Positions 9,155 through 54,649 of a stretch of DNA of 64,000 bases are shown here, one piece after another (within the stretch, counting starts at the first letter, position 1; the number at the start of each line of letters is the position of its first letter). This stretch comes from Obrimoposthia wandeli (lineage: Eukaryota), in contig CDROCS010003840.1 in NCBI GenBank assembly GCA_977020255.1, positions 124,001-188,000 on the forward strand, read 5' to 3'. The notes under the pieces are model-generated. The model was not told the origin of the DNA. It saw only the letters and a list, made by a program, of their open reading frames with translations, and made no database searches. A program made the translations under genes and the position numbers.

Positions 9155-9209
9155 TATAACCAAGTTACCTCAAGATGTCGGTATCAGCGAGAATTTGTTG
9201 AGATCGAGG
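9155..9209 (+). repeat. Truncated left end of the ERIC-like MITE found at 50343
   Basis: 47/55 identity by hand alignment to 50343-50397. Confidence 0.75.
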
Positions 9210-9326
9210 TTAGGTGAACAATCGATAGATGAAAAAAATCCGCCCATAGAAGGACGGATTCAGATGTTATGTTTGCCAATATTATTTAACCAATAGGTAA
9301 TTAACCAGTATTTGGTTAACCAAAGG

Positions 9327-23976: not shown

Positions 23977-25026
23977 CTAAGAATGACCGAAAGTACGAGG
24001 TCGGGTGTAATAATCAATCAGTGGTACACACATGTTGCCAAGTAAGACCCCAAATGCAACCCCATCAGGGAAGCCACCCCAAGTGCGAATGAGGTAAACC
24101 AGCAGCCCAATGAGTGCGCCAAAGATGATGCGCCCTTTCACTGTCGTGCATGCCGATACGGGGTCAGTTGCAATAAAGAATGCCCCTAACATGGTTGCAC
24201 CAGAGAACAGGTGGAAGATAGGAGAGGCAGTACCATCAGGGTTTAATAGGTAGGCAATACTGCTGATCAAAAATAGCATGCCTAGCATTCCTGCTGGAAT
24301 TTGCCATTGGATAATGCGCATTTTCAGCATGATTAAACCACCAATCAAAAAGCCAATATTAACCCACTCCCAACCGATGCCTGCAATGGCGCCATATATT
24401 GGGTTTGCCAATGTTTCAGAGGCTGTTAGCCCTGTGGTTAATGACGTCTTAAATGTATCAAGCGGTGTAGCCATTGTTACGCCATCGATTGACATGCGTA
24501 GCTGATGAACACTAAAACCGTCTTGAGTGAATCCTGTAAAAACAGCATATACACTATCAATTAAAGAGACTGGCTCTGCACTTAATGATGCTGGTGGTAA
24601 CCATGTTGTCATTTGTACTGGAAATGAAATGAGCAGTACCACATAGGCAACCATTGCCGGGTTAAAGAGGTTTTGCCCTAAGCCGCCATAGAGATGTTTA
24701 GCGATAAGAATGGCAAAAATAACCCCGATTACTGTTATCCACCATGGTGCTAACGGTGGAATAGACAACCCTAATAAAAGACCGGTTAGTAATGCGCTAT
24801 TATCACGAAGATAAGGCATTATTGGACGTTTTCTTAATTTAACAATGATAGCTTCAGTGACAACTGCAACAGAAGACGCCAACAGAATTTGAATTAACGT
24901 ACCCCAGCCAAAAAAGAACCATTGTGCAGCTACACCAAAAACGGTGCAGAAAATAACGGTGCGCATAATGTTGCTGGTACTGCGACGATTATGAGTATGC
25001 GGAGAACTGGCAATTTTGAAAGCCAC
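23977..25026 (-). CDS. rsxD: Rnf/Rsx complex subunit D
   Basis: [25 protein letters not shown] and FIATDPV motifs. Confidence 0.95.
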
Positions 25027-25029
25027 GGC

Positions 25030-27618
25030 TTAATTATCCTTGTTATTCAGTTGAGCTTCTTTTTCTGCTTGTTGCGCCGCTTTACGGGCTTTCGCACGTG
25101 CAACGGCAGCAGCTATAGCGGCTTTTTTCGGATCGATTTCGGCTTCCTTCGGATCGACCTCGGCTTCTACCGCGGAAGCAGGTTCTGTGTTTGAACTCGA
25201 ATCGGGTTCTTCTACGTCATCTTGGTCAGCTTGTTGCGCGGCTTTACGGGCTTTCGCACGTGCAACGGCAGCAGCTATTGCGGCTTTCTTCGGATCGACC
25301 TCGGCTTCTACCGCGGAAGCTGGTTCTGTGTTTGAACTCGAATCGGGTTTTGCTACGTCATCTTTTTCAGCTTGTTGCGCCGCTTTACGGGCTTTTGCAC
25401 GTGCAACGGCAGCAGCTATTGCGGCTTTCTTCGGATCGACCTCGGCTTCTACCGCGGAAGCTGGTTCTGTGTTTGAACTCGAATCGGGTTCTGTTGTGTT
25501 CTTTTGGTCAGCTTGTTGCGCGGCTTTACGGGCTTTCGCACGTGCAATGGCGGCAGCTATTGCGGCTTTCTTCGGATCGACCTCGGCTTCTACCGCGGAA
25601 GCAGGTTCTGCATTTGAACTCGAATCGGTTTCCGCTGCGTTAGTTTGGTCAGCTTGTTGTGCCGCTTTACGGGCTTTTGCACGTGCAATGGCAGCAGCAA
25701 TTGCGGCTTTCTTCGGATCGATTTCGGCTTCTACCGTTGAAGCTGATTCCGTGTTTGAACGCGAATCGGGTTCCGCTACGTCATTTTGGCCAGCTTGTTG
25801 TGCCGTTTTACGGGCTTTCGCACGTGCAATGGCAGCAGCTATAGCAGCTTTCTTAGGATCGACCTCGGCTTCCACCGCTGACGTAGATTCCGTGTTTGAG
25901 CTTGACTCTGATTCAGCAGCTTTTCTCTCACGCGCTAAACGTTTACGTTCTTCTCGTAATTTCGCCATTTCTGTATTATCAGGAACCGCGGTTTTATCTG
26001 CTTGGGCTGCTTGTTTGGCTTTTGCTCGAGCAATAGCGGCAGCTACAGCGGGCTTCTTTTCTGTATCTGGTGAACTTGCAGCGGCTTGTTTGGCTTTCAC
26101 GCGAGCAATGGCTGCGGCTACCGCATCATCACCACCCTTAGTTGCGGTTTCTTTACGACGATCATCAGCGGCTTTCTTAAAGCGATTCTCACGCTCAGCT
26201 TTGTCTCGTACCATACGCGCATTTTTAGCTTCAAAGCGTAATCTTGCGCGCTCGGCATTGGCTTCATCTTGTTTTCTGGCGGTGATTTCAGATTTAGCCT
26301 GACGGTAGTATTGAACAAGTGGGATTTCACTTGGGCACACATAAGCACACGCACCGCATTCAATACAGTCGAAGAGGTTATATTCTTCGCATTTTTCGTA
26401 ATCTTTATCTTTCGCGTACCACTGTAATTGCTGAGGTAATAAAGATGCAGGGCAAGCTTCTGCACACGCAGTACAACGAATACAGGCCATCTCGTGAGTA
26501 TGTAAAGGCAATTCTTTTCGTTTAGGCGCAAGAATGCAGTTTGTCACTTTAGTAACAGGCACATTGGCGTGAGGTAAAGTGAAGCCCATTAATGAACCGC
26601 CAATAATGACGCGAGGGTACTTCTTATCTGGCTGATAGCTGTAGTTATCAAGCAGGTATGAAATTGGTGTTCCGAGGCGCGCAAAAACATTACCACGTTG
26701 CTGAAAAGCTTCTCCCGTTAAGGTAACGACGCGTTCAATTAAAGGCTCGCCGTCGATAATGGCACGTTTGACAGCAAAAGCTGTTCCCACGTTTTGTACA
26801 ATGACACCGACCGATGTTGATCGCGCTTGGCTGGGTACTTCACGCCCAGTCAGTACTTTAACCAGTTGCTTTGAACTGCCTGATGGGTACTTAGTCGGTA
26901 TAACTCGAATAATGATGTGGTCATCTTTCGTAACGTGTTTTTCTAATGCTGTAATGGCTTCTGGTTTGTTGTCTTCAATACCAATCATCGTTAACTTTGG
27001 TTTCACGATATGGCGAAGAATACGAATACCATCAATAACTTCTGCGGCATAATCTTGCATTAAGCGATCATCTGCGGTGATATAAGGCTCACACTCCGCT
27101 GCATTGATGATCAGAATATCAACTTTACCCAAACCACCTTGCAATTTACGGCTGGTCGGGAAACCTGCGCCACCTAAACCTGCAATACCACTGAGTCGTA
27201 TTTTCTCGATCAGATCAGCAGATTCTTCGGCGGTATAATCAGCTACAGGTGATTGTTCACACCATTGGTCATTACCATCGCTGTCGATAACAATACATAA
27301 ATCGGTTAAACCTGAAGGATGGGCGATCGTGCGTTGTTCTATTGCCGTAATTGTTCCCGACGTGGGCGCATGCACAGGTACACACATGGCAATATCACCT
27401 TGGGTCAGTGGCTGACCTTTCAGGACTTTATCGCCAATCGCGATAATAATATCGCCTCTAGACCCTATATGTTGCTTTAGAGGGAGAATAAGTTGCTGCG
27501 GTACGCCAGCGTGTTGCAGTTCAACTTGATTAGAAATGGCTTTGTTTTCTGCTGGATGAACACCGCCATGAAAATCCCAAAGCTGACCTTGTTTTATTTG
27601 TTCGATTATTGACAGCAT
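25030..27618 (-). CDS. rsxC: Rnf/Rsx complex subunit C with long C-terminal repeats
   Basis: FHGGVHP, GLGGAGFPT, NAAECEPY and two 4Fe-4S motifs; DPKKAAIAAA repeats. Confidence 0.95.
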   Translation of the reverse strand: MLSIIEQIKQGQLWDFHGGVHPAENKAISNQVELQHAGVPQQLILPLKQHIGSRGDIIIAIGDKVLKGQPLTQGDIAMCVPVHAPTSGTITAIEQRTIAHPSGLTDLCIVIDSDGNDQWCEQSPVADYTAEESADLIEKIRLSGIAGLGGAGFPTSRKLQGGLGKVDILIINAAECEPYITADDRLMQDYAAEVIDGIRILRHIVKPKLTMIGIEDNKPEAITALEKHVTKDDHIIIRVIPTKYPSGSSKQLVKVLTGREVPSQARSTSVGVIVQNVGTAFAVKRAIIDGEPLIERVVTLTGEAFQQRGNVFARLGTPISYLLDNYSYQPDKKYPRVIIGGSLMGFTLPHANVPVTKVTNCILAPKRKELPLHTHEMACIRCTACAEACPASLLPQQLQWYAKDKDYEKCEEYNLFDCIECGACAYVCPSEIPLVQYYRQAKSEITARKQDEANAERARLRFEAKNARMVRDKAERENRFKKAADDRRKETATKGGDDAVAAAIARVKAKQAAASSPDTEKKPAVAAAIARAKAKQAAQADKTAVPDNTEMAKLREERKRLARERKAAESESSSNTESTSAVEAEVDPKKAAIAAAIARAKARKTAQQAGQNDVAEPDSRSNTESASTVEAEIDPKKAAIAAAIARAKARKAAQQADQTNAAETDSSSNAEPASAVEAEVDPKKAAIAAAIARAKARKAAQQADQKNTTEPDSSSNTEPASAVEAEVDPKKAAIAAAVARAKARKAAQQAEKDDVAKPDSSSNTEPASAVEAEVDPKKAAIAAAVARAKARKAAQQADQDDVEEPDSSSNTEPASAVEAEVDPKEAEIDPKKAAIAAAVARAKARKAAQQAEKEAQLNNKDN
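25060..25910 (-). repeat. Coding tandem repeat, 141-bp (47-aa) period
   Basis: GGATC anchors at 25856, 25715, 25574, 25433, 25292 and 25151, then 25130 (21-nt microduplication). Confidence 0.92.
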
Positions 27619-42670: not shown

Positions 42671-42947
42671 AGTTAATCTCGATTAATCGCTTGTATTGAT
42701 TACTACTTATTGACTTACTCGAATATATACAGAGTGAAAGGCAATAAATAATAAGTAATTATGGACGCTATTGTAGCAGCCTAGTTAAATATGGGCAGTA
42801 GCCTCAGCGTTATATTTTATGCGCCGTATTTTAATTTTGTAGAAAAGTGAACAATTATAAGACGTTTAGATGATTTTTGTTGACCGCTCCTTAGATGGTT
42901 ACTATAGTAGCGCTCCGTTGTGGTATTCATATCCAACGGCAATTTGT

Positions 42948-43035
42948 GGTGAGGTGTCCGAGTGGCTGAAGGAGCACGCCTGGAAAGTGTGTATACGGCA
43001 ACGTATCGAGGGTTCGAATCCCTCCCTCACCGCCA
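42948..43035 (+). tRNA. tRNA-Ser (GGA)
   Basis: 88 nt, anticodon loop CCTGGAAA, long variable arm, encoded CCA. TTGACC...TATAGT promoter upstream and terminator downstream. Confidence 0.97.
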
Positions 43036-43245
43036 TCCTTTAAAGAAGCCGTCCTCGTGACGGCTTTTTGCTATCTGCAATACTGTAAATAGCTTATCCC
43101 CCCTTTAACATCCCTTTTATTGGCGTGAACATTTGTTAACCACTCTGCAATTGTAACGAACATATATTGACCGACTGATTAGTCTATCTATTATTAATTA
43201 TGGATTGTTATTAAAGTGTTAACTCACAAGTCGTAAGGGGCAAGT

Positions 43246-45490: not shown

Positions 45491-46366
45491 TTACGCTGTT
45501 TTCAAGTTCAGGTTGATCATTTCTATTGGAAATGTCTCGCTTGGTTCGACGAGTTCATTTTGGGCTAGAATGGTTTGCAATTCCCACTCGTTTAGCTGAT
45601 GAGTTTGTTTAAGAACGCCATAACAAGCATCATGGCAATGTTGGAATGCATGCATTGTTGAGTAACCTTTTAATAAACCCGCGGTGAACAACGAAGATAT
45701 CAGGTCTCCAACCCCAACGGGTTGCTGAGCAAACGTTAAATGAGGACGCTGGGCCAGAAAACAACCTTCGGGTGTGGCTAACAGCATGCTGAACTTATCG
45801 TCTGAAACACAATATAGATGCTTAACAAGAACAACTTTTGGACCTTTAGCTAAAGCAATGTTGCAAGCTTTCACTGCATCAGACAGCGTGTTGATTTCCA
45901 TTTGTGCAAATTGGCTGAGCTCGAATTGATTCGGCACGATAACATCTGCCATTGGCATTAAATGATTCACCAAGTATTCCGTAATGCCGGGAGCAACGAT
46001 ACAACCTTTATCGGGGGCTCCCATGACAGGATCACAGATGTACAAGGATGAAGGGTTTTTGGCCTTTACTTTTTCTACGGTTCTGATGACAGCCTCACAT
46101 TGTTCAGCACTTCCTTGATACCCGGTGAGAATTGCTTTACAACGCGTTAGCGCATCAATGTTATCAAGCCCCTGAACCAGCTCATCAATATCTGAGGCAG
46201 AGAAAGCACGTCCTGTCCAACCTTGTTTATATTGAGTATGATTAGAAAACTGAACCGTATGTATTGGCCATACTTCGAACCCCATTCTTTGCATCGGGAA
46301 AATAGCAGAGCTGTTTCCTGCGTGTCCGTAAGTAACATGTGATTGAATTGATAGAATGCCATGCAT
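45491..46366 (-). CDS. pdxY: Pyridoxal kinase PdxY
   Basis: [28 protein letters not shown] and GVGD motifs. Confidence 0.93.
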
Positions 46367-46779: not shown

Positions 46780-48033
46780 TTAGCCTGTAAAAGCTGGAAG
46801 TATGCCTAACATAGACATGAAGTGGAACACGGCTGTTAAAAAACCAAAGCCAATGACTAAATAAATCATGACCTCACCACCTGGCGCTTTAAAGCCTTTA
46901 TTACCGTTCTCTAACGTGCGTGCCTTTCTCACGAGAAGTGCAGGAATAATACACGTCCAAACGGTTGCTGCAGCGCCAGCATAGCCAATGACAATGACAA
47001 AACCAAATGGGAATAGCAATGATAGGATCAAAGGTGGTATGAAAGTCACCAGCCACGTTTTTGTACGACCTTGTTTGTTGTCTTCGAACTTGAACAGATC
47101 TGCCAAATAGTCAAACACCCCAAGTCCAACACCAATGAAGGAAGATAGAATCGCCGCCATTGAGAAGATATTGATCGCATGCGCCACTTTTTCAGATTCA
47201 ATAACTGAGCCTAACGCGGTTAATAGTGCATCTACGTTACCGCCTTGCTCAATCACAGGTCCAAATTGGCTTCTAGGCAGGTTTCCATAAATGCTGAACA
47301 ACCATAGGAAATATAGACCTAACGCGATTACTGTGCCGCCCAAAATCGCGTATTTCGCTTTTTGCTCTTCGCCGTAATAAGCACGCATTGAAGCCACAGA
47401 ATGGTGATAACCAAACGATGTCAAAGCGACTGGCAGCATCGCCATTGCGTAGGGTGCGTAGCTCGCTTTTTCATTGATGGTGTTAAACAAGATGGACATA
47501 TCTACTTTGATCGCCAGCCCTGACACACCAAATACAAAGCTTAAGACCATAAATGCGATTAGAACTACGGAAATTCGGTCTACTGCTCGAGTTGAGTGCC
47601 AAACGAAGGATGAAAACACCAAAACAAACAAAATAGAGGTAATTTTGCTATCGAGGTCCAAAATATCTTGAAGGATAAGGCCTGAAGATGTGATGTAGGC
47701 GTACAGTAAAATACCTCCGACAAAATACACAGCCAGGTTATTGAACATGTTGACTTTATCACCAAGCATGTCTTTGGTTACCGTGTTGAAAGATACTTTT
47801 AAGTCATAATGCTTAAAAGCTTCTAGCAGCATCCAACCCGAAACGGTCATTACGACCATTGTTACTGTAATCGCGAAAACTGACCAAGTAGTCCATGCTC
47901 CCGCCCCTGCGCTTGGGAGCCCCAGCATGCCCGCACCAACGCAGACACTGGCAATAATACATGCCCCTCCTATTAATGACGGATGTTTTTCCTTAACACT
48001 GTCGCTTGATACTAATGACGGATTCTGTTCCAT
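46780..48033 (-). CDS. tnaB: Tryptophan permease (TnaB/Mtr family)
   Basis: CVGAGMLGLP and TSFGYHHSV motifs; directly downstream of tnaA. Confidence 0.88.
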   Translation of the reverse strand: MEQNPSLVSSDSVKEKHPSLIGGACIIASVCVGAGMLGLPSAGAGAWTTWSVFAITVTMVVMTVSGWMLLEAFKHYDLKVSFNTVTKDMLGDKVNMFNNLAVYFVGGILLYAYITSSGLILQDILDLDSKITSILFVLVFSSFVWHSTRAVDRISVVLIAFMVLSFVFGVSGLAIKVDMSILFNTINEKASYAPYAMAMLPVALTSFGYHHSVASMRAYYGEEQKAKYAILGGTVIALGLYFLWLFSIYGNLPRSQFGPVIEQGGNVDALLTALGSVIESEKVAHAINIFSMAAILSSFIGVGLGVFDYLADLFKFEDNKQGRTKTWLVTFIPPLILSLLFPFGFVIVIGYAGAAATVWTCIIPALLVRKARTLENGNKGFKAPGGEVMIYLVIGFGFLTAVFHFMSMLGILPAFTG

Positions 48034-48147: not shown

Positions 48148-49614
48148 TTAAGCTTCTTCTAGAACCTTGGTTTCCTTTTCCGCTGCTTTTTGTACTGGCT
48201 CAACTTCTTTGAGTCGAGCAGTAAAGTGACGAAGCACTGCTGGCTCATAAGTAAAATCAAGCCCTTTCACATTTGCTGCGTTTTCCTTCACTTTTTGGAA
48301 CGCTTCTATAACGAAATCCATATGCGTTTGAGTGTAGGTCGCACGTGGGATAGTCAAACGAAGTAGCTCGGCAGGACAAGGATGTTGCTTGCCTGTCGCT
48401 GGATCGCGACCTAGTAATAGAGAGCCGATTTCAACGGCGCGGATACCCGCAACTTTATAGAGTTCGCAAGCAAGAGCATGCGCTGGGAACTGCTCGGTAG
48501 AAATGTGTGGAAGCAGCTTACCTGCGTCAACGAATGCCGCGTGGCCACCCGCTTGCTGACATACGACACCGATAGTTTCTAGACCGTCTACAAGGTATTG
48601 AACTTGACCAATACGGTATGCAAGCCACTCTTGACGCATGCCGTCATACAGGCCAACAGCAAGACGCTCCATCGCACCGCCTTCTAAACCACCGTAAGTT
48701 GGGAAACCTTCTTGAATCACACACAAAGTACGACACTCTGTATATGCATCCATCATGGACTCATCTTTGAAGCAAAGTAGGCCACCCATCTGTACCATGG
48801 CATCTTTCTTTGCAGACATAGCTAGGCCGTCAGCATACTTATAGGATTCACGTGTAATTTCTTCGATAGTCCAACCTTTGTAAGCCTCTTCACGTTGTTG
48901 AATAAAGTAGGCGTTCTCAGCGTAACGAGCGGAGTCCATAATCACTGGAATGTCATATTTCTGAGCGATCTCATACACCGCTTTTAGGTTAGCGATAGAA
49001 ACGGGCTGACCACCTGCAGAGTTACAGGTAATGGTACTCACAATGTACGGTACGTTTACAGGGTCGGCGGCAAGGATCGCTTCTTCTAGCTTGACGAGGT
49101 CAAAGTTACCTTTGAAATCGGCATTGACCGAGGTATCAAACGCATCTTCTGTATACACATTTTTCGCCACGCAACAATTTACTTGAGTGTGACCTTGTGT
49201 TGTATCAAAGAAGTAGTTAGACAGTGCTACCATTTTGCTACGATCTAGTCCCTTCTCTATTTCACGTTTCTTAATAAGGACAGGAATGTAGATTTGCTCG
49301 GCACCACGACCTTGGTGAGTCGGAATGGTTAATTCATAACCAAAGATATCTTTTACCGCGTTCGCAAGTGCGTAGTAGCTGCGGCTACCACTGTATGCTT
49401 CATCGCCACGGAACATCGCGGCTTGCATTTCTTGAGTAATTGCCCCCGTTCCACTGTCAGTAAGCAGGTCAATGAATACATCTTCACTATCTAGCAGGAA
49501 TGGGTTCATACCCGCTTTTAAAATAGCTTCATCGCGATATTCACGAGTAGTGCGTTTTACTGGCTCAATAACACGGATACGGAATGGTTCAGGTAAATGC
49601 TTAAAGTTTTCCAT
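48148..49614 (-). CDS. tnaA: Tryptophanase
   Basis: [22 protein letters not shown] and MSAKKD (PLP lysine) motifs. Confidence 0.97.
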
Positions 49615-49812
49615 AATAATGCCTTTACTTTTATTTGGTGTTTTATTTCACCAGAAATTAATATTTGGTTTTTATGTCGCTAACATTCAAATTAATATCA
49701 TGCCTTCAACGTTATCTGACACTTTTATTTTACTGTGAGTAAAGCTGCGTCAAATAAATAACGAAATATAGGTGTATTAATTTCGCCTCAAAGAAAAGAG
49801 ACGTAAATGTTT

Positions 49813-49917
49813 CTATATATAATATAAAGGGAAGTAGTAAGATATTTTGTGATCTTCAATATACCATGGCTTTAGCGATGAAAATATTGAATGTTGCCAT
49901 TTGAAATACATGTTCAT
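49813..49917 (-). CDS. tnaC: TnaC-like leader peptide, tnaA-proximal (34 aa): MNMYFKWQHSIFSSLKPWYIEDHKISYYFPLYYI
   Basis: W18, D22, I25 and P30 reproduce the spacing of E. coli W12, D16, I19 and P24. Ends 198 nt before tnaA. Confidence 0.85.
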   Translation of the reverse strand: MNMYFKWQHSIFSSLKPWYIEDHKISYYFPLYYI

Positions 49918-50083
49918 TTTATGTGCTCACATAAAAATCAAAATAAAATCAACAGTCAGCATTATAAGTTAAATACATTAAAGCACCTTTGCTTTCACAA
50001 ATGTAATGTAACCTAAATAACACCAAAAGTTAGTTGTTAGAATGTATTGAATTATTGAGGCGTATAAAAATCGCCTCTATATT

Positions 50084-50182
50084 TTATATAGAAGATAACT
50101 GAAAGGATAGTATATGGTCTACGTTATACCAGGCTAACAAAGTTAGCGCCGAAGTTGATTTCCATTTGAGGTACACGTTCAT
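50084..50182 (-). CDS. Second TnaC-like leader peptide, distal (32 aa): MNVYLKWKSTSALTLLAWYNVDHILSFQLSSI
   Basis: WYNVD resembles E. coli WFNID; same register as the proximal copy; AGGA RBS; Ser at the Pro position. Confidence 0.7.
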   Translation of the reverse strand: MNVYLKWKSTSALTLLAWYNVDHILSFQLSSI

Positions 50183-50342
50183 TTTATGTCCTATATGAAA
50201 AAGCAATGCTTTAAATGTATAAAAAAAGTATCCTATAATTATATTAATAAATATATACTAATTATCAATAAATGTGACCAAGGGCGGCAAAAAGTCGCGT
50301 GTGAAAATTGAAAGGTTGTCATGTTGTGAGCAAAGTCAAGTG

Positions 50343-50596
50343 TATACCCAAGTTACCTCAAGATGCTCGTTTCAGCGAGAATTTGTTGGGCTCTAGGCAA
50401 GGCACTTATTTATAAACCGAGTTGTTCTACGTTGAAAATAAGTAACACCGCATAGAGCCCAACAAAACTCGCCCTTCGGGAGTGATTCAGCGTATCTACT
50501 TCTGTGTCAAATGTGTTTGAAAGGGAATGCCATTCCTACACACATTTCCCTTGAATTAAACACGCTGAGTCACTCTGAATCCTGCATCTGGGTATA
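50343..50596. mobile_element. ERIC-like MITE (non-autonomous, highly structured)
   Basis: TATACCCA...TGGGTATA termini and AGATGC/GCATCT. Internal inverted repeats TTGTTGGGCTCTA/TAGAGCCCAACAA and GAGTGATTCAGCGT/ACGCTGAGTCACTC. Confidence 0.8.
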
Positions 50597-50629
50597 GTGC
50601 TTTTTAGATGCGATCAGATTACCGAATAA

Positions 50630-53600
50630 CTATTTAGCAAAAGGGTGCGCCATTTGATCTTTTATCGATACTTCCAACTGAGGTGACGCAATGGAGATAT
50701 CATGTTTGATGAATTTATTTTTGATTCGGCAATGTAAGTCATGCGTTAACCCTAAACGATGCCCTGTTTCTGCCGCATAAGCACGCACTTCAAAGTTCTG
50801 GCAGTTTGCCGTTAGCCCTAAAAAGAACACTTCAGGTGCGGGGTTATCCAGTACTAATTCACATTCATCGGCGGCTTCAAATAATAACTGGGTAACTAAT
50901 TCGCTATCAGATAAATATTGAACACTGATTGTAAGTGTTACTCGAGTAATGGCATCTGATAGTGACCAGTTAATAAACTGCTCGGTAACAAAGGATTTAT
51001 TGGGCACGATGACTTCTTTGCGATCCCAATCTACGATGGTTGTTGCGCGAGTTTTAATTTTTGCTACGACACCAGTCAATTCCCTAATGGTGACGGTATC
51101 GCCAATTCGAATTGGTTTCTCGAATAAAATAATGATACCTGAAATAAAATTAGCAAAGATTTCCTGCATACCAAAGCCGATACCAACACCCAGTGCCGCA
51201 ACCAGCCATTGCATTTTACTCCAATCGAAACCAATCAACCCAGAGCCGATAATGATACCAGTGAAGATAGCAAAGTAGCGGGTGAGGGACGTTATGGCAT
51301 AACCAGTACCAGGACTAAGATCAAGGTGTTGGAGTATCAGTAGTTCCATTGCGCCGGGTAAATCTCGCGCGAGAATACCTGTTAAGAAGATAGCGAGAAT
51401 GGCCAGTAAAACACTTTTAATTGTAATAGCGCTGAGTTGTTCAATGCCATTAATAGTACTTGTCACATCCCACAGTGAAATATCTTCAAGTAGGGTGATC
51501 GCTTGATATAAGTCGTCCCATATCAATGACAATATGGCGACATAAATAAGTAATAACAATGAACGTAATAAACGTAAAGATTGCGCGCTAATTCTATCAA
51601 GATCAACTTCTGGTTCTTCTATTTCAATCTGTAATTCACTGCTTATTGGGGCATCATCTTTGTCTTCAAGTACTTCAGCTTGTCGTTGAGCGATTATTTC
51701 TTGTCGTTTTATTTTTGCTCGCTCGAAAGCCAAACGGCGTTTTTGAATGAGCATCAAACGCTTTACTAAGTAATAAATAAGCAGAGTAACAACCCCGATA
51801 ACGGCGGACATTTCCATCTTATTCATGACAATTTGAGATGAACCTAAATAACCATTTAAAGCCGCATAGTTTAAACATTGAGGGATTAGAATCAGTGTCC
51901 ACCAAAAAATGTGGTGACCAATATGTGCTTTACCTTCAGGTACATCACCGTAAGTCATCGGTAATTTTACTTGCCACATACGCCAATGAAAATAACTGAC
52001 AGCAATATTACTGATAATGAAGGCTAACCGTCCGAGAGTGCCACTGATATCAATATCACTATAAAGGTAGGTGAAGTTTTGAATCACCATCATCGGCAGG
52101 TAGATCCATAATAGATTCCGATAATGTAAAAATGTTTTGTTTACGACACTTTCATCCCAATTAAAGTGGCTGATAAATAAGCCATTATCTCTAACTATTT
52201 CACGCATGAAACAATAAACAACTAAAGCCAAAGGTAATGAGAGGGCTTGGCCTAAATGATGAACAAAAGGATATTGCCAAGCTGAACTGAGTAAAATACC
52301 GGTTATAGCAATAATAATGGGTACGGGCCAAGCAAGGCAGAAAGAGAGAAAAACATTGATATAGCTGTAACTGAATTTGTCTTGTGTCACCTTTCCTATT
52401 TTTTTACTCGTTTTCTCAAGGTATTTAAGCCACCTGCTGCGACACCAACTTAAACCCATAATAATAAGGGTGATAATACCCAGACCAATAAATAGCTTTA
52501 GTTTTTCTATTACGGCCGGGGCTTTTAATAAATCAACCCATTGGAATGGAGAGAAAAACCATTTTAGTTTCTCCCATGTGTCGGTAATGAGGTTAAGGCT
52601 AAATGTTTTGGCATCTGGTGCCCAAAAAAGCCGCTTTGTAGCTTCGGTTTTTAAATCAATAAGCATGTTATTTAACCGATCAAAAGCCACGGTTAATGTT
52701 GCTTGTTGGTAGATTAAAGTATCTGAAGCCGCTGTTACTTTTTGTAATAAAGCCAAATTAGTACTGATGAGTTTCTTTGCCGTTTTTTGTTGTTCTGGTG
52801 TGAGAGTCTCAATTTCAGTGAGGTTTTTTGCACGTTCAGATAAAACATCGTGTTGTTGTTGATACTCATATTTATTGATTTGGTTCTGAGCAATGTTTTT
52901 GTTTAAGGCTTCAATAGGAGGGTTAGAGGGTAAACGATCTATTCGGGTTCGAAGGCTTTCACTGAATGCAGGGCTTAGCTTAAGCCATTCAGACATCATA
53001 TCTAAGTCATCAGCTGTTTTAGAGACGATGGTGATTTGTTCATTCGTTGTTTTTATCTGTTGCTGTACTTGCTCTCTTTTCGTAGAGAAGCTACCAAATG
53101 AAGATGACAGTCGTTGATTTGTTACAATTAACTGACGAAGTACTGGTGGCTGATCAATTAAATTTTCTTGTAACTCATCACTGTTTTCAATGTTTGTATC
53201 AGCGCTGGTTCGAAGTACGCGGTTCAGCATATTTTGCAAGTTATTGCGGTAGGCCTGACGAGCTTCAATTTCTAAATTGGCATAGGTGATTTTTAATTTA
53301 GTTAACGTACGGCGATTACCTGAACTAAGTTGTTCGGCTTCCAGCATAAAGACTTGGCTGATATAAAATTGTTGTTCGATTTTTAATAACAGGCTTTCAT
53401 TCAGAGCAGTAGTATCGCTACTGTCATGCTGAGTATTTGCTAGCTGCGTTTCTACTTTTTTTATTTTTACTCGAAGCGCTTCTGATTGATAAGAAAACTC
53501 ATCAATTCCATGTTCAATTTCAAGTAGAAGATTTTTGTCATTTTTTCGTGTTACTTCTAATTGAACTAAAGCGCTGTCTTGATCGGCAATTTCAAGGGTT

Positions 53601-53938: not shown

Positions 53939-54181
53939 AGATATGCCTATATAGAATCCATAATCATGAAGGCTCTAAACCATAAACTTACGATTAAACG
54001 TATTGAATTACTTCAAAATAAAAGTGTAGCAGTGAATAAATAGAATTGATTGGATTAAGAATAAGGCGAATTGGGCTAATAGTCGACAAACGAGAGTGGT
54101 TTGAAGAAAACCCCTTGACCCTATCGACCTAAAACATTACATTAGCCGCCGTTGAGACGTAGAGCGTCTTGGCAACAATGT

Positions 54182-54269
54182 GGTGAGGTGTCCGAGTGGC
54201 TGAAGGAGCACGCCTGGAAAGCGTGTATACGGCAACGTATCGAGGGTTCGAATCCCTCCCTCACCGCCA
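54182..54269 (+). tRNA. tRNA-Ser (GGA), second copy
   Basis: Differs by one base from 42948-43035; encoded CCA. Confidence 0.97.
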
Positions 54270-54293
54270 TATCTCTTTTAGAGATATAAAAAC

Positions 54294-54384
54294 GGAGAGA
54301 TGGCTGAGTGGTCGAAAGCACTGGTCTTGAAAACCAGCAAGGGTTTATAGCCCTTCTAGGGTTCAAATCCCTATCTCTCCGCCA
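54294..54384 (+). tRNA. tRNA-Ser (TGA)
   Basis: 91 nt, anticodon arm GGTCTTGAAAACC, variable arm, encoded CCA. Confidence 0.95.
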
Positions 54385-54649
54385 CATTCAAAGAAACCGC
54401 TAATTTATTAGCGGTTTTTTTACGTCTGAAGTTTGCCAATAAGATAGGGATGCAGAATCCTAGATTGGGTTCACCTGAGCGAAGCGAAAGCACATTGCTC
54501 GTACCGAAGGTGCGAAAAGGCAATAGCCCGAAGGGTACGAGCTTGCGAGTAATAAATCCCTATCTCTCCGCCACATTCAAAGAAACCGCTAATTTATTAG
54601 CGGTTTTTTTACGTCTGAAGTTTGCCAATAAGATAGGGATGCAGAATCC
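54365..54649 (+). repeat. tRNA-linked direct repeat: 96 bp twice, 189-bp period
   Basis: 54365-54460 equals 54554-54649; each copy holds the last 20 nt of tRNA-Ser(TGA) plus a terminator. Confidence 0.9.

Follow-up and report, generated by a model that had tools for sequence, protein, structure and literature searches.

The tryptophanase operon in the window, the 64,000-nt stretch of DNA analysed here, is preceded by two homologous TnaC-type leader modules. The reading that we favour, with a probability of roughly 0.55, is that both modules are under selection, that each would arrest its ribosome in tryptophan, and that they would act as checkpoints in series before tnaA. The host is a Photobacterium of the profundum group, and its TnaA shares 98% identity with the Photobacterium frigidiphilum protein and 97% with the P. 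profundum protein. The region upstream of tnaA (49600-50300, minus strand) contains two short ORFs with their ATGs 265 nt apart, and tnaA and tnaB lie downstream of both on the same strand:

50084-50182, minus strand: distal leader ORF, 32 aa, MNVYLKWKSTSALTLLAWYNVDHILSFQLSSI, stop TAA
49813-49917, minus strand: proximal leader ORF, 34 aa, MNMYFKWQHSIFSSLKPWYIEDHKISYYFPLYYI, stop TAG
48148-49614, minus strand: tnaA, tryptophanase, 488 aa (Pfam Beta_elim_lyase, 2.6e-77)
46780-48033, minus strand: tnaB, tryptophan permease, 417 aa (Pfam Trp_Tyr_perm, 2.4e-129)

The distance from stop codon to tnaA ATG is 469 nt for the distal ORF and 198 nt for the proximal ORF, and each ORF (32 and 34 aa) falls within the 24-36 aa of TnaC peptides and, as expected of a TnaC, lies directly upstream of tnaA in the same orientation. 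Downstream of tnaB, a 291-aa ORF (45491-46366, minus strand) presumably encodes a pyridoxal kinase of the PdxY/PdxK type. If this identity is correct, a cofactor-salvage gene lies beside the PLP-dependent tryptophanase.

A preliminary description of this locus had proposed two paralogous TnaC-type leaders with starts 265 bp apart, and the alignments bear this out. Local alignment of the two modules at the DNA level scores 62, against 18.9 ± 2.6 in shuffles (shuffle maximum, 33), while global alignment of the two peptides scores 59, a value reached in 0 of 2000 shuffles. A repeat scan finds a 48-nt direct repeat with 77% identity and 265-nt spacing across the two modules, and the homology begins ~25 nt ahead of the ATG and runs through the whole ORF. 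The start sequence ACATAAAATGAAC, which precedes the ATG of both ORFs, and the register M-N-x-Y-x-K-W7...W18-Y-x-x-D22-H, common to both peptides, are also present as previously described. Because the alignment scores lie far above those of the shuffles and a direct repeat is present, the comparison identifies the leader modules as a diverged tandem duplication and not a product of chance.

Against TIGR02616 (NCBIfam tnaC_leader; 22 profile positions, curated cut-off 23.55 bits), the proximal ORF scores 39.0 bits (E 5.2e-10, profile positions 2-22), above the cut-off, and the distal ORF 15.8 bits (E 0.011, profile positions 9-19 only), below it. Two orthologues of the distal ORF fall slightly over the cut-off, with 25.6 bits in locus L004 and 24.7 bits in locus L043. 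Neither leader peptide matches any model in a Pfam search, and an Rfam search of 49000-51000 gives matches at chance level only. The proximal peptide has the canonical TnaC residues W18, D22, I25 and P30 (CCT), followed by L-Y-Y-I. The distal peptide has W18, D22 and L25, but Ser30 (TCT) replaces the proline. The sensor pattern of TnaC (W-x3-D with Ile or Leu at D+3) is therefore found in both ORFs, and Pro at D+8, the equivalent of E. coli Pro24, in the proximal ORF only. The preliminary description had treated the two as equivalent W/D/P sensors, a view that does not hold for the distal ORF, whose Ser30 places it in a separate and widespread subfamily (class B, below). W, D and Ser at D+8 are all invariant in 24 aligned class B sequences. 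Class B peptides of the V. splendidus type and of Moritella score 19.2 and 16.4 bits with TIGR02616, both under the cut-off, and the class B matches cover profile positions 9-20 only, with the F-P end outside.

The peptides of this strain show some departures from those of relatives. The distal peptide differs from the class B consensus by three C-terminal changes (K24I, H28Q and E32I), and the proximal ORF, which terminates in P-L-Y-Y-I-stop, has lost the P-(S/L)-K-stop ending found in most Photobacterium proximal leaders. The leaders of this strain may have drifted from the typical setting, and the distal peptide may be relaxed here.

Purifying selection is evident in both ORFs. Among 12 Photobacterium leaders, pN/pS of the distal ORF is 0.22 in frame and 1.16 and 1.52 in the shifted frames; the corresponding values for the proximal ORF (W-10 to P30) are 0.31, and 1.03 and 0.95. 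The selection at the peptide level that had been suspected earlier is thus seen for each ORF in its own frame only. In 35 unique sequences, the class B core A17-E32 has a pS of 0.72 and a pN of 0.12 (ratio 0.16), and its Pro-less C-terminus F27-E32 is as constrained as the sensor half (0.15 and 0.17, respectively). The class C core W18-P30 gives a pN/pS of 0.16 in 12 unique sequences, at a pS of 0.70 at which synonymous change is saturated. Mean pairwise nucleotide identity across the 12 species is 0.81 in the distal ORF, 0.72 in the proximal ORF and 0.57 in the inter-ORF spacer, while the proximal tail after Pro varies freely. The distal ORF, whose lack of conservation had been named beforehand as grounds for abandoning the proposal, is the better kept of the two (81% vs 72%) and the best-conserved part of the leader at the nucleotide level. 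Since purifying selection is confined to the proper frame, the substitution patterns indicate that both leader ORFs are translated and retained for their peptides. Both are very probably real, translated and selected TnaC-type leaders, and an explanation as chance ORFs is rejected in view of the module homology and the frame-specific selection.

A codon preference is found at the 3′-end of the class B ORF (codons 30-31; window 50090-50095). Ser30 is encoded by TCT in 32 of 35 unique sequences and Ser31 by TCA in 26 of 35, and Ser26 uses four codons freely. The bias at Ser30 and Ser31 hints at a tRNA-specific or RNA-level constraint at this end of the ORF.

A survey of the 80 closest tnaA loci, with one genome per species, yields four kinds of leader:

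Class A: ...SWFTLDYKIAFFFP(1-2 aa); single in V. cholerae, V. mediterranei, Grimontia, Enterovibrio and Aeromonas
Class B: ...LLAWYNxDHxLSFHLSSE-stop, without Pro; single in the V. splendidus clade, Psychromonas, Moritella and some other Vibrio
Class B': ...LAWYTHDYQISILPS...; V. anguillarum and harveyi-type species
Class C: ...PWY(I/V/N)EDxK(I/L)SxxFP(0-7 aa)

In the window, the distal ORF belongs to class B and the proximal ORF to class C. The same B-then-C tandem occurs with equal spacing in 11 other Photobacterium species (L001-L008, L010, L012 and L015), and the tandem-bearing Photobacterium are split into three well-supported subclades of the TnaA tree. V. tapetis (L040), the sister of the B-only V. 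splendidus clade, has the tandem too; it is degenerate in L046 and L047, and Vibrio sp. MA40-2 and TH_r3 have a proximal-type ORF in degenerate form. The class B alignment, used as a profile against 1.84 billion protein representatives, returned five clusters only; ORFs of this size are rarely called as genes. Both hits that were examined for location (2/2) lie just upstream of tnaA.

The Psychromonas leaders (L014 and L043) are collinear with the Photobacterium leader, minus the ~100 nt that hold the proximal ORF, of which the last codons are retained together with everything downstream. A relic of the proximal ORF was also looked for in V. splendidus-type leaders, and none was found. Because the Psychromonas leaders are collinear except for this gap, the tandem arrangement is probably ancient in this tna lineage, with the canonical proximal copy probably lost on more than one occasion. 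It follows from the loss of the canonical ORF in some lineages that two sensors are not required, and the class B copy, which is always retained, would appear to be a competent stand-alone regulator. In a Psychromonas metagenome-assembled genome (L024:2115-2720), the whole class B module has undergone an independent, younger tandem duplication, with a unit of ~322 nt and 82-83% identity. By this comparison, duplication of tnaC modules is recurrent.

Each leader stop codon is followed by a small hairpin:

50057-50077, minus strand: distal post-stop hairpin GAGGCG-N9-CGCCUC, 6 nt past the stop, -10.1 kcal/mol, z -4.2
49780-49808, minus strand: proximal post-stop hairpin AUUUACGUCUC-UUUUCUUU-GAGGCGAAAU, 4 nt past the stop, -9.1 kcal/mol, z -3.1

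A GAGGCG hairpin-like motif of the same design had been reported after both ORFs. This stands for the distal ORF, but the proximal GAGGCG is a 3′ arm that pairs with the upstream CGUCUC across the loop UUUUCUUU, not with the downstream CACCU. A GGCG...CGCC hairpin occupies the equivalent position in class B loci of several genera, and a few paired substitutions, G>A/C>U in L008 and in L011 (e.g. GAGACG/CGUCUC in L008), leave the stem intact. At the proximal post-stop position, the hairpin of other Photobacterium subclades differs in sequence. Post-stop hairpins that begin 5-8 nt beyond the stop codon are a general feature of classes A, B, B' and C, at mean z-scores of about -1.4 to -2.8. RNAalifold gives no consensus for the class B post-stop hairpins and a weak four-pair consensus for the proximal ones, from alignments that are out of register. 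As for the C-rich, G-poor, rut-like tracts of the preliminary description, G-free runs are indeed present: one of 36 nt with 9 C follows the distal hairpin (50025-50060), and another of 40 nt spans the 3′-end of the proximal ORF. The excess of C over G downstream of the leader stops is, however, modest (C minus G at most +12% in 60-nt windows). A scan for intrinsic terminators on the minus strand found none and the hairpins are without U-runs, and an intrinsic-terminator mechanism is rejected for these reasons.

In E. coli, free tryptophan binds the TnaC-ribosome complex and blocks release at Pro24-UGA, and the arrested ribosome masks the adjacent rut site, so that Rho does not terminate transcription before tnaA (PMC8429421, PMC12360218). 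The peptide comprises a sensor domain (W12 and D16) and a stalling domain (P24 and its neighbours) (PMC8429421, PMC12360218), and W12, D16, I19 and P24 are required (PMC8429421, PMC10941005). In Proteus vulgaris, TnaC has W20, D24 and P32 with two Lys codons after the Pro, and arrest takes place during elongation; TnaC peptides range from 24 to 36 aa, and their Pro is regarded as "semi-conserved" (PMC3902921).

The Photobacterium locus resembles the E. coli tnaCAB operon in having a small ORF directly upstream of tnaA-tnaB, the W-x3-D motif, a hydrophobic D+3 residue, a D+8 position close to the C-terminus, an untranslated spacer of ~200 nt before tnaA and, in the proximal ORF, all four critical residues. 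It differs in having two ORFs instead of one, peptides of 32-34 aa instead of 24, two to four codons after position 30 where E. coli has a stop directly after Pro, a small GC hairpin after each stop, and Ser for Pro in the distal peptide. Proteus vulgaris TnaC is similar in length (34 aa) and also has sense codons after Pro, but it is a single leader, and the window's proximal peptide closes with its own L-Y-Y-I tail.

In the favoured reading, each module has a ribosome-binding site, an ORF of 32-34 codons, a small post-stop hairpin and a G-poor tract. Transcripts would start upstream of the distal ORF, and free tryptophan would arrest a ribosome at the end of each leader, where it would shield the downstream RNA from Rho. 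Because promoter-like sites lie upstream of both leaders, RNA polymerase would pass two arrest-peptide checkpoints in series before reaching tnaA. The proximal peptide would combine a sensor part (W18, D22 and I25) with a stalling part ending at Pro30, and would be expected to function as the Proteus or E. coli peptide does. The distal peptide has the same geometry (W, D at +4 and position 30 at D+8, then two codons and the stop) and would have the same sensor part joined to another, Pro-less stalling part (F-H/Q-L-S30-S-E/I). As the stalling parts differ, the two checkpoints probably differ in sensitivity. Module homology, conservation, frame-specific selection, phylogenetic distribution and hairpins are computed from the sequences, and from these we infer ribosome stalling, the involvement of Rho, the transcription start and the action of the two leaders in series. 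That both leaders arrest in tryptophan and also act in series is an evenly balanced proposition. AND-like sharpening is uncertain and would depend on kinetics; strict AND logic is not guaranteed, because a stalled proximal ribosome could alone block Rho loaded upstream.

A change of Pro24 abolishes induction in E. coli, and for that reason the Ser30 leader may respond to tryptophan differently or not at all. Only the proximal, Pro-containing TnaC would then sense tryptophan, and the distal ORF would be a Trp-insensitive, translated upstream ORF retained for translation coupling in the leader, for basal read-through or for another ligand. The absence of the Pro that E. coli needs (PMC8429421), the score of the window's distal ORF under the TIGR02616 cut-off and the class B match to profile positions 9-20, short of the F-P end, are consistent with such a role. 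Yet class B keeps W, D and L/I at the exact spacing, the constraint on its C-terminus matches that on its sensor part (0.15 vs 0.17), and in many genera no other leader precedes tnaA. Genera with class B only would then be left without leader control, in spite of a retained post-stop hairpin and long spacer. Loss of the proline is also not beyond compensation by a neighbouring residue, since the defect of P24C is partially suppressed by R23H (PMC10941005). A proximal leader as the only tryptophan sensor is therefore unlikely. Because class B is strongly constrained and is the sole leader in many genera, it would be expected to arrest in tryptophan, and the Pro-less class B peptide most likely functions as an independent tryptophan sensor.

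The series arrangement further depends on where transcription starts. The relevant features of the leader are:

50183-50289, minus strand: promoter-like block upstream of the distal ORF, TCACATTTATTGATAA ... TATATTTAT ... CTATAGGAT
50189-50192, minus strand: Shine-Dalgarno-like AGGA, 6 nt before the distal ATG
49918-50056, minus strand: inter-ORF spacer, including a conserved GAAAGCAAAGGUGCUUU element and TATAAT at 49961-49966
49715-49779, minus strand: conserved leader block, mean pairwise identity 0.69, including TCGTTATTTATTTGACGC at 49747-49764

TAGG(A)ACAT at the distal start is conserved in 12/12 Photobacterium leaders, and at the proximal start the corresponding element is a weaker GUGAG, 8 nt ahead of the ATG. 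The best match to the promoter consensus, TTGATA-16-TAATAT (50268-50241), falls in the block upstream of the distal ORF. This block is conserved in 12 species, with a mean pairwise identity of 0.75 vs 0.48 further upstream, and holds the only promoter-scan hits on the minus strand. An internal start would instead give transcripts that meet the proximal attenuator only, or none, so that the sensors would operate in parallel and not in series. The idea of two promoters goes back to the preliminary description, which had pointed to the TATAAT between the copies. The hexamer is indeed there, but it has no -35 element and is not conserved, its counterparts in relatives being TACAAT, TGTAAT, CATAAT, TTGAAT and TTTAAT. 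The conserved leader block contains a second candidate, TTGACG-N15-TAAAAT (49740-49765), with a 15-nt spacer that is too short for a usual sigma-70 promoter. The scan gave no minus-strand promoter-like site at either place, and on that strand the stretch between the copies is also free of terminator-like hits.

Expression data consist of metatranscriptome contigs of relatives (90-97% identity, low depth, DNA carry-over possible). In one run, from marine sediment, tnaA is covered up to 49815 at a depth of ~22 and a separate contig covers 49809-50104 at ~3.7, a step of ~6x; in a second run, a contig crosses 49660-49938. None of these contigs of relatives extends to the start of the distal ORF, and at most they attest to RNA that spans the proximal ORF together with the inter-ORF spacer. 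The contig break falls exactly at the proximal stop codon (49809-49815). The depth step there could stem from stalled-ribosome processing, a second start or a break in the assembly graph. It fits badly with a single upstream start and, like the lack of an RNA contig at the distal start, agrees with an internal promoter, but the contig depths of relatives are a poor measure and, with DNA carry-over possible, constitute weak evidence. With promoter-scan hits confined to the region upstream of the distal ORF, the two-promoter arrangement has little in its favour and is improbable.

The TCGTTATTTATTTGACGC motif of the conserved leader block is unique in the window and lies ~140 nt before tnaA in Photobacterium and Psychromonas loci. 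It is retained in the two Psychromonas leaders (L014:1517-1529 and L043:2640-2652) although the proximal leader ORF is deleted there. The block could mark a site of termination, pausing or binding.

At 50340-50590, between an mscK-like gene and the tna promoter region, there is a dispersed short repeat with a second copy at 9155-9214 (83% identity). Its contig depth is ~1000-1900 vs ~14 in the flanks, in a DNA-like run, and it is probably a MITE- or REP-like element. A repeat scan of the whole window also finds six tandem copies of a 141-nt unit at 24995-25999 (63-93% identity over the 300-nt reference copy), a perfect 96-nt direct repeat at 54365-54460 and 54554-54649 (189 nt apart) that contains a terminator-like hairpin, and two tRNA-gene-like 92-nt copies with 99% identity at 42945-43036 and 54179-54270.

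Regulation by the distal class B leader alone, with the proximal copy a redundant duplicate heading for loss, is likewise improbable: the proximal ORF is missing in Psychromonas (a ~100-nt gap with the last codons left), the V. splendidus clade lacks it, the copies of Vibrio sp. MA40-2 and TH_r3 are degenerate, and the proximal tail is variable, but in the window the ORF retains all four critical residues and scores 39 bits, its W18-P30 core is constrained (pN/pS 0.16 at pS 0.70 in 12 unique sequences), and a variable tail after Pro is expected if arrest occurs with Pro in the P site, as in Proteus.

The preliminary description knew of no tandem tnaC. A full-text search of the literature likewise found no paper on a natural tandem or duplicated tnaC or on a Pro-less subfamily, although an earlier mention among published lists of TnaC homologues is possible. 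The ORFs themselves are already labelled in NCBI annotation: in P. alginatilyticum, both are named "tryptophanase leader peptide" (the adjacent NBI53903.1 and NBI53902.1), and the distal type is given the same name in other Photobacterium species.

Few ligand-sensing arrest peptides have been studied as thoroughly as TnaC, which also serves as a tryptophan biosensor. We tentatively propose, as a possibility clearly short of even odds, that the Pro-less LAWYNxDHxLSFHLSSE-stop peptide is a TnaC variant that has kept tryptophan sensing with proline-independent silencing of the peptidyl transferase, that it serves as the primary sensor of a large marine clade, and that in Photobacterium it forms a two-threshold switch in series with a Pro-type TnaC. 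A natural subfamily with the sensor residues but no essential Pro would reveal what the stalling domain requires and would offer new sensor variants. In tandem riboswitches and tandem T-box leaders, two complete sensors of the same ligand in series produce a steeper or lower-leak response. The tna leader is similar to these in having two complete, homologous cis-acting modules in series before one operon, and would differ in relying on nascent peptides and presumably Rho, instead of RNA aptamers and an intrinsic terminator. The system is tractable, with short ORFs, clear residues to mutate and natural relatives with one leader and with two. Two attenuators in series that are built on arrest peptides would parallel tandem riboswitches at the level of the nascent peptide, and a sharper or lower-leak induction of the tryptophanase operon may be possible.
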